From NCBI GenBank assembly GCA_964199315.1, contig OZ116701.1, forward strand, positions 7,192,001-7,256,000: a stretch of 64,000 nt of DNA, in the 5' to 3' direction. The number at the start of each line of letters is the position of its first letter. Positions within the stretch are counted from its first letter, which is position 1. Position numbers and translations under genes: made by a program. This document shows positions 9,915 to 18,930 of this stretch, piece by piece. The stretch is from Orbicella franksi (taxonomy: Eukaryota). The notes beneath the pieces are model-generated. The model had not been told where the DNA came from. It was given only the letters and a program-made list of their open reading frames with translations, and did no database searches.

Positions 9915-10107
9915 TGTTCTCGTGTTATAAGTCAAGATTTCGTGATATAACAGCTCGAGATCTCGAGTTAGTAAAGCGAAATGTCGCAATATAACTCGAA
10001 ATCTCATGTTACTAAGTCCAGATCTCGCGTTATTAACAGGAGATCTCACATTGTAAGTCGAGATCTCATGTTACTAAGTCGAGATCTCGTGTTATAAGTC
10101 GAGATCC
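9915..10107. repeat. ~22-bp minisatellite with palindromic core TCGAGATCTCG
   Basis: Repeated TCGAGATCTC(G/A)TGTTA(C)TAAG units; probably internal to a decayed DNA element. Confidence 0.75.
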
Positions 10108-10273
10108 CAAATTAAATCAACAGTAATTTTTTGGCTATAAAAAAATATACTCATATCCAGATGGCCCCTACGGGCCACCGTCGATTTCAGTCTTTACAAA
10201 GGTAGTATTTTAAAATAAAAATACTTGTGGGCGGCACGCAGGAACAACTAATGATCTTGGACAACTGAGTTTA

Positions 10274-10318
10274 TTAATCGACCGGTTTCGTCTGCTAGTG
10301 AGACTTCGTCAGGATTAA
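10274..10318 (-). ncRNA. Minimal type I hammerhead ribozyme in a Penelope-like terminal repeat / retrozyme remnant
   Basis: Minus strand: TTAATC (stem I) CTGACGA A GTCT-cactagc-AGAC (stem II) GAAA, palindromic ACCGGT (stem III), GTC cleavage triplet, GATTAA (stem I'). AATAAA follows immediately and TATAAAA lies ~30 nt upstream. Confidence 0.8.
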
Positions 10319-10681
10319 ACTACAAGATACAAAGATGGAACTTATTTTATACTAAATATTGGTAGTACAAAGTACGCTCCCGCTGTAGGGTGTGAACAAC
10401 AAGACACCCACAAGAAATACGTGCAGGCTATGACTAAAATCCTGCGCGAGAAAATGTCTAATGAAATGTAAGCGGAGCTCACGGATTTAACGTTAAAAAA
10501 TGTTTTCTTCTCCAAGTGAAGGAACAAATGTTTGGCTGCCTTAAGTGACGTAAATAACTTCTAGCGCCTTTTTCGTACCTAAAACAAACATTTTTGTTTG
10601 CTACTTAGTGAAATCAACGCTCAGCGCTACCTTTTCCTCTAAAACGAACTTATAGTTCTTTCCCTCGGCTGATATACTAGA

Positions 10682-10770
10682 CCTAACCCTAACACTAACC
10701 CTAAACCTTAGGATTAGGCTTAGATCTAACCCTAATGCATAGCTTAGTGTTAGGTAATAATAACCCTAGC
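10682..10770. repeat. Degenerate telomere-like (CCCTAA/TTAGG) repeats in mixed orientation
   Basis: CCTAACCCTAACACTAACCCTAAACCTTAGGATTAGGCTTAG...TAACCCTAG. Confidence 0.6.
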
Positions 10771-18016: not shown

Positions 18017-18841
18017 GTAAGTACTAATTACGTCTATAGTACTGAAATTTGCTTTGAATCCAAATTTTGGCAGGGGTCGCACTTACGGGTTCGATGTTTA
18101 CATTGGACATAAATTCTGTCATCGCATGTTCGCGACATGTGCCACCCTTATGTCGTGACCAGACATAACTTTCAATTTCTGAAGTTTGCCAGTTCTATCT
18201 TAATTTCAACCTGTGAATTTTAATCTTAGCTCTTTATTTTTAATTTTGGTAACTCCATGGTGTTGATTAAAATTCGCTATCTTAATTAAAGTACTTTCCG
18301 CTCGTATTGTATGTTGCATTGTTCTAATTGTAAACACTTAATGTGTAAATGGTGATATATAAGAGAGTGCATTTGTAAAGCTTTTCGATCACACTGTATG
18401 ACGAAGATTATTATTGACGAGTGCGGAATAAACTGCCTTTGGACCAAGTTATGTCTCCTCCTTGGCGTCCGTAGTGAAGACCATTGAAGTAGATCCTCGT
18501 GTACCAGGAAATCGTGACGAGTTTCTGTTCCCGCAGGCAAAGCAGTGCTCTCCAGAGCATTGTAGATTCCACAAGTTTCAGTCGAAGTGTCACGGTTCAT
18601 TCAGAAATTTACAGTCGCAAGGGAAAAACCTATCGTCGTGTATCTGTATGTCGTGTTTAAAATTTCTTTCGCGCTCGACAATAATGATAACATGAGGTTC
18701 GTCATCGGAATGTCATAGAACGTTCGTATCGTCTTGTGATTTCAAGTAAACATCAAGTTTCCAAAGTATAATCTATACTGGCACTACCTTTTTTTAATTG
18801 GAAATTGTCACTAGCTCCTTTCCATGGCTACTTCTCACTGT

Positions 18842-18880
18842 ACAACTGACGATGGATGTCTCATCCGAAACATGTATTGT
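18842..18880 (+). ncRNA. Second minimal type I hammerhead ribozyme (Penelope-like terminal repeat)
   Basis: ACAA (stem I) CTGACGA T GGATG-tct-CATCC (stem II) GAAA, palindromic ACATGT (stem III), GTA cleavage triplet, TTGT (stem I'); ATTAAA downstream. Confidence 0.68.
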
Positions 18881-18930
18881 CTTCATTAAAAAATGAACTT
18901 CAAAAACATCGTGTGGTTCATCAAAGCGAC

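Follow-up and report, generated by a model that had tools for sequence, protein, structure and literature searches.

The window, by which we mean the entire 64,000-nt stretch of Orbicella franksi DNA that was analysed, carries on its minus strand (10497-10207) a repeat unit that we consider, with a probability of about 0.85, to be a dead, 5'-truncated solo copy of the non-coding 3' end, or pseudo-LTR (pLTR) unit, of a Penelope-like element (PLE). It is this part of the element that serves as the pLTR where copies stand in partial tandem. In the master element this unit would sit right after the stop codon of the reverse transcriptase (RT). Its TATA box would start transcription about 30 nt downstream when the unit lies upstream of a full copy, and its hammerhead, lacking a helix III of its own, would fold only once its ACCGGU pairs with that of a second copy, in the other pLTR of the same RNA or in a separate transcript, and would then cut after GUC. 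RT, entering from the 3' end, would then stop or snap back at a palindrome, leaving solo units with a fixed 5' end and double units. We infer the promoter, cleavage and snap-back steps, the promoter from only three junctions. The window copy itself most likely does nothing now, because it lacks both a partner and a coding part and none of its RNA was detected.

The 291-bp unit and its reverse transcriptase partners

Read from the window sequence, the minus strand at 10318-10274 carries a minimal type I hammerhead motif made up of the core, the helices and a palindromic helix III. Helix I pairs UUAAUC (10318-10313) with GAUUAA (10279-10274). Its 5' strand is followed by the CUGACGA core (10312-10306), a bulged, unpaired A after A9 (10305), and helix II, in which GUCU (10304-10301) pairs with AGAC (10293-10290) and closes the 7-nt loop CACUAGC. 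Next come GAAA (10289-10286), CCGG (10285-10282), U16.1 (10281) and C17 (10280), with CCGG lying in the palindromic helix III, A-CCGG-U (10286-10281). The core (CUGANGA ... GAAA ... UH) is thus complete and in type I order, and the window copy keeps every core position of the hammerhead. Helix III is the palindrome ACCGGU, which is loop-less and unable to close on itself. From the hammerhead consensus, self-cleavage is predicted after C17 (10280/10279), which would leave 10279 as the 5'-OH terminus of the 3' product. The first-pass annotation had described this minus-strand core, stems I and II and the ACCGGU palindrome as we find them, without mention of the bulged A at 10305.

The motif belongs to a complete, solo unit of a 291-bp repeat family, family A (10207-10497, minus strand), whose boundaries are common to about 30 genomic copies. 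The 5' end of the unit (10497-10474) consists of TTTAAC (10497-10492) and GTTAAATCCGTGAGCTCC (10491-10474). A TATAAAA box (10351-10345) lies 33 nt upstream of helix I, and an AAUAAA hexamer (10275-10270) begins within the last bases of helix I, just past the cleavage site. The 3' tail (10278-10207) ends in TATTTTAAAAT, and independent copies end alike; the unit runs 63 nt past AAUAAA and has no poly(A) tail.

Family A has at least 45 genomic matches, many of which go back to a single insertion that segmental duplication has copied (C5 26.5-27.8 Mb; C6). At least 13 copies are independent, with a mean pairwise identity of 90% (range 85-94%), and 8 of these 13 carry one or more lesions in the hammerhead core or helices. 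Because of this identity and the share of copies with lesions, we conclude that family A is old and that its copies are decaying neutrally. As a separate observation, one A insertion has been copied, flanks included, at least 14 times on C5:26.57-27.84 Mb and 3 times on C6:23.19-23.45 Mb, in duplications that are large, young and segmental or tandem, with spacings of about 45-130 kb.

The copies of family A are dispersed solos, with three exceptions. At one locus (L026), a 129-bp inverted arm abuts the 5' end of the A unit. At a second (L019; G000 C4:11476998-11480242), a full A unit is followed by a second copy of positions 180-291. At the third (L020), two A pieces are separated by 22 bp, and an RT remnant (67% and 58% amino acid identity to the ORF of metagenome contig L096, described below) is fused by deletion to A position 55. 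The second locus also holds a unit of a sister family, family B, 870 bp beyond and on the opposite strand, so that an old and a young lineage have inserted side by side. A search for A units around an intact interior of ~3 kb found none, and one decayed candidate (C11:17548782-17555520). Among 13 loci, no target-site duplication was convincing.

Around the window copy, the unit is not repeated in tandem, in or near it. No ORF of at least 90 amino acids lies within about 2 kb, and tblastn with 31 PLE ORF queries from the O. franksi genome returned no match anywhere in the window; the earlier statement that no RT ORF is nearby therefore holds. About 90 bp past the 3' end of the element, at 9918-10119, the window also contains tandem and inverted repeats of 21/41/62 bp, all based on the palindromic word GAGATCTC. 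This block gives weak, chance-level miRNA-like Rfam matches and may be another small transposon.

Family B units are 275 bp long and 73% identical to A over their full length. The blocks conserved between the two families are the first 24 nt, the TATAAAA box, the hammerhead core, AATAAA and the 3' end. In helix I, three double changes preserve pairing (AAUC/GAUU vs. CUCC/GGAG), and helix II has a fifth pair in B. TATAAAA and AATAAA, which the first-pass annotation had placed upstream of and after the motif, are both real and have been kept between A and B despite 27% overall divergence; both probably mattered in the master element.

Copies of family B are 97-100% alike, and the family is for that reason young. 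At six or more loci its units are arranged as an inverted B unit, a B unit, an interior of about 2.9 kb and a further B unit, at a spacing of 3168-3172 bp. Full-length loci of B include G000 C11:812739-816444, C10:29974515-29978223, C12:26807496-26811201 and C11:18178628-18182336. Other B copies form bare head-to-head pairs, and more than half of the B loci are unit-only. The B hammerhead was also found in 21 public metagenome contigs, which appear to be of coral origin, and the 2.9-kb interior is known only from about 1.4 kb of metagenome contigs.

The coding partner of B is seen in four of these contigs. In L096, B is directly preceded by an ORF for a PLE-type RT with an FIDD motif; this RT has 35-36% identity to the RT portion of those PLE ORFs in the O. 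franksi genome that carry GIY-YIG. In L092, the same RT ORF runs through the thumb region and reaches its stop about 12 nt before the B unit and its palindrome, and in L101 and L107 an inverted B unit is followed by the RT ORF. In the genome-wide tables, where 150 of 1018 and 150 of 6192 candidates were scored and other families dominate, no row placed an RT or GIY-YIG domain inside a B interior. A further ORF beside a B copy in a coral metagenome contig (L109:680-1477, minus strand) encodes a host HEPN_DZIP3 domain (E = 8e-47) and was rejected as element-encoded. Because an RT ORF abuts B and an RT remnant is fused to A at L020, we take A and B to be the 3' untranslated termini of two PLE lineages that are related to each other.

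The RT ORF of B (L092:4004-4525; L096:2-619) has no C-terminal GIY-YIG domain and ends in the thumb region. Pfam likewise found no GIY-YIG domain in 10 of its closest database relatives (521-1050 amino acids, up to 70% identical); the proteins examined on the RT side of B include P0002, P0025 and P0027. Together with the 97-100% likeness of the B copies, this points to a partner from an interstitial, recently active PLE lineage that putatively has no endonuclease, as judged from an RT read without its N-terminal half, where a nuclease is possible.

Fixed 5' ends and the alternatives to a PLE terminus

The B unit starts inside a perfect 44-nt palindrome (TTTTGGGGCTCACGGATTTAAC followed by GTTAAATCCGTGAGCCCCAAAA) that comes after the RT stop codon. 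In terms of B, the first 24 nt of the A unit correspond to the 3' arm of this palindrome plus 6 nt of its 5' arm. Copies of A start 3-9 nt past the palindrome apex, the window copy retaining 6 nt (TTTAAC), and head-to-head copies are symmetric about the same apex (L026, L031). RT, running from the 3' end of the RNA, may end at this hairpin, or may fold back there and self-prime. If true, this would explain both the solo units and the palindromic double units. Alternatively, two direct units could recombine and leave a solo.

Three partial pieces resume inside the unit, one at A position 180 (L019) and two in B, at positions 170 and 161. All three junctions fall on the first base of helix I, 24-33 nt beyond TATAAAA. 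If the junctions are template switches at RNA 5' ends, transcription would start at the 5' edge of the hammerhead. Such a TATA-driven start fits the published transcription starts of Penelope and Chlamys-3, which lie in the pLTR (PMC8557442). We therefore put forward, as a tentative idea with the odds against it, that the PLE 3' unit is a compact, LTR-like control module, in which TATA sets a start at base 1 of helix I and the palindrome serves as the site where RT stops or self-primes.

These fixed ends also bear on the strongest rival, in which the 291-nt unit is a self-standing, non-autonomous (retrozyme-like or SINE-like) element copied in trans by a PLE RT. Every copy of A, and the majority of the young B loci, consists of the unit alone, with 5' ends that differ by a few nucleotides at most, and the pieces that restart at A 180 and B 170 show that sub-unit RNAs have served as templates; moreover, a preprint of 2026 traces animal non-LTR retrozymes back to PLE pLTRs (10.64898/2026.07.22.740005). 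However, there is no promoter upstream of the first base of the unit, and its only TATA box, at position 147, would give an RNA of 112 nt. The fixed 5' end coincides with a perfect palindrome that would itself stop or turn back RT. Finally, unit-length tandem arrays are absent, and both A and B are joined to RT coding sequence. We regard a self-standing unit as unlikely, and a PLE 3' end as the better account of the same copies.

RNA data gave no sign of activity at the locus. Sequencing runs in which the stretch occurs carry coral labels. Raw reads from two poly(A) RNA runs, and RNA-library contigs from two sets, were mapped on 10000-10700 at a likeness of at least 90%. The first raw run placed 0 reads on this interval. 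The second placed 10, all of them 90-95% alike and from other copies, with none at 95% or above, and only the RNA-library contigs gave coverage at the family level. Neither read starts nor read ends piled up, including at 10279/10280, in these poly(A) runs, which are poor for small non-polyadenylated RNAs. No back-joint crossed the unit in the poly(A) libraries or assembled contigs, which are poor for small circles; the only joint found lay outside the unit, from 10101 back to 10020. Thus, the window locus has no evidence of expression, cleavage or circles. The absence of RNA 5' ends, cleavage ends and circular joints, like that of a recognised target-site duplication, counts against the PLE reading. 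So does the lack of any A copy with an intact interior between two units, as well as the small part of the B interior that is known and the result that folding of a monomer or a dimer does not favour the hammerhead structure over others.

The same data weigh on a second rival, that the unit is a monomer of an animal non-LTR retrozyme, which yields small circular RNAs through double hammerhead cleavage. The window unit resembles such a monomer in being non-coding, AT-rich and about 290 bp long, with a hammerhead of type I topology. In contrast to a retrozyme, it is not tandem: in family A, pieces lie next to each other only in the pair separated by 22 bp and in a 1.4-mer whose second part begins at the hammerhead. 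Its ribozyme is of the minimal PLE type and not of the canonical coral-retrozyme type (PMC7229834), and neither RNA contigs nor reads contain back-joints. Having found no unit-length tandem arrays, no canonical ribozyme and, in the poly(A) reads and RNA contigs, no circles, we reject the retrozyme identity as very improbable.

The first-pass annotation had left the choice between a solo PLE terminal repeat (Penelope pLTR) and a retrozyme monomer. Its first option stands, since B flanks 2.9-kb interiors and abuts an RT ORF and A is fused to an RT remnant; its second falls, since the copies are dispersed solos with a minimal PLE-type ribozyme. The tandem copies and circular RNAs that it had proposed to look for did not appear, the copies being dispersed solos and back-joints absent from poly(A) reads and RNA contigs, which are poor for small circles. 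Its suggestion that the locus may still make a self-cleaving RNA likewise found no support, with 0 reads at 95% or above, no pile-ups or back-joints, and no compatible partner nearby.

The minimal hammerhead class across the genome

A genome-wide hammerhead search, which the first-pass annotation had proposed, was carried out on the 497-Mb assembly with a core-only pattern. It gave 933 matches vs. 63 with a reversed-pattern control, a 15-fold enrichment, and in the window it gave 2 matches vs. 0.01 expected. The 933 genomic motifs group into sequence families. Helices I and II were left free in this search, but the core and the two outer helix III pairs were prescribed, so that only the inner pair of helix III is a free test of the palindrome.

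Of the 35 distinct motifs taken with their flanks, every one carries an additional base, A or U, behind A9, forms the G10.1-C11.1 pair and has a helix III that is palindromic (ACCGGU, ACAUGU or ACGCGU); G10.1-C11.1 is G-C in each of 14 family representatives. When these 14 representatives were aligned, 88.8% of the cells were paired, vs. 27-44% when the partners were slid by 1-3 columns. The covariation score was 0.757, vs. at most 0.22 in the slid controls, and 0 of 500 shuffles scored as high. Helix II was 97% paired, and 4 of its 5 pairs had changed on both sides. Across families, then, the sequences of helices I and II vary and their pairing is kept, with strong covariation. Four features that argue against chance have been listed for the minimal hammerhead ribozymes (min-HHRs) of PLEs (Cervera & De la Pena 2014, PMC4209133). 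The coral motifs match all four, and the motif is not a chance occurrence.

Rfam gave no hammerhead match in the window at gathering scores, nor at E <= 10 on 1 kb. This miss is expected because the window hammerhead has no helix III hairpin, and Rfam models miss the minimal PLE hammerhead class entirely; the null result is a limitation of the models and not counter-evidence to the motif. Minimum free energy (MFE) folding of the 60-nt motif, the 291-nt unit and an RNA dimer was no better than that of shuffles and did not recover the hammerhead fold, which is also expected because the ribozyme has no helix III of its own. The empty Rfam result and the MFE folding could be taken to favour a chance fit to the hammerhead consensus in AT-rich DNA, a reading that is refuted by the 0.01 matches expected per window, the 15-fold genome-wide enrichment, and the strong covariation and conservation across the family, and to which we give practically no weight.

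Single min-HHR motifs show no detectable cleavage in vitro, and their dimers cleave only weakly (PMC4209133). Near the window copy there is no compatible helix III partner; the sole other motif in the window lies 8.5 kb off, on the opposite strand, and cannot pair with ACCGGU because it carries ACAUGU. This second minimal hammerhead belongs to another family (18846-18876, plus strand; flanks 18838-18884). It has CUGACGA, a bulged U, a 5-bp helix II (GGAUG/CAUCC), the palindromic ACAUGU, a GUA cleavage triplet and a helix I of only about 4 bp, and it is related to abundant ACAUGU families in the genome.

Relation to published hammerheads and PLEs

The window motif shares with PLE min-HHRs (PMC4209133) the type I topology, the unpaired base 9/10.1, the G10.1-C11.1 pair and a palindrome that needs a dimer. 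The genomic picture is also shared: many covarying families per genome, with most motifs solo, pairs ~3 kb apart around an RT ORF, and opposite-strand pairs a few hundred bp apart. Helix II is 4 bp in A and 5 bp in B, vs. 7-8 bp in the Schistosoma min-HHR families, and helix I is 6 bp here; nothing differs in kind from the PLE min-HHRs (PMC4209133). The sequence-level defining features of the published class, min-HHRs in PLE pseudo-LTRs, are all present in A, and by this measure we assign A to it.

Among stony corals, Acropora millepora is reported to have more than 6000 type I hammerhead motifs in 16 families (Cervera & de la Pena 2020, PMC7229834), and all but 1508 of these resemble the minimal variants of PLEs and Terminons (PMC7229834). 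The A. millepora minimal hammerheads are thus like those of O. franksi in both host and motif class. That study characterises 220-245-bp tandem retrozymes with canonical hammerheads, and not the minimal families (PMC7229834). Family A is an addition to the known class; A or B may correspond to one of the 16 families of A. millepora (PMC7229834). With the animal non-LTR retrozymes, A shares a non-coding, hammerhead-bearing and PLE-related nature. In contrast, those retrozymes form unit-length tandem arrays and have canonical, efficient hammerheads and abundant circular RNAs, none of which was seen for A.

Typical PLE insertions have partial tandem pseudo-LTRs and an inverted 5'-truncated copy, with the hammerhead near the 3' end (Craig et al. 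2021, PMC8557442). The arrangement of B, in which an inverted unit and a direct unit precede the interior and a further unit follows it, and the head-to-head units of both A and B match this layout. Unlike the PLEs of that study (PMC8557442), B has an RT without a C-terminal GIY-YIG domain, and its partner looks endonuclease-less though interstitial. The canonical endonuclease-less PLEs, Athena and Coprina, are telomeric, unlike the interstitial partner of B.

The kind of element described here is already known, since PLE minimal hammerheads were published in 2014 and thousands of them in a stony coral in 2020. The value of the present case is that it is a dissected one, tying one solo motif to a coding partner. 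The comparison of A with B also yields two testable leads on how PLEs work: transcription would be started by a promoter right at the ribozyme, and a palindrome would fix the 5' ends and form the symmetry centre of inverted copies. Both bear on the mechanism of PLEs, which is still unclear in the literature. If the 3' unit is indeed a control module, every element RNA would begin with a ribozyme, and there would be a mechanistic account both of solo units, with their fixed 5' ends, and of the head-to-head palindromes, one that would extend to an endonuclease-less PLE lineage inserting inside chromosomes.
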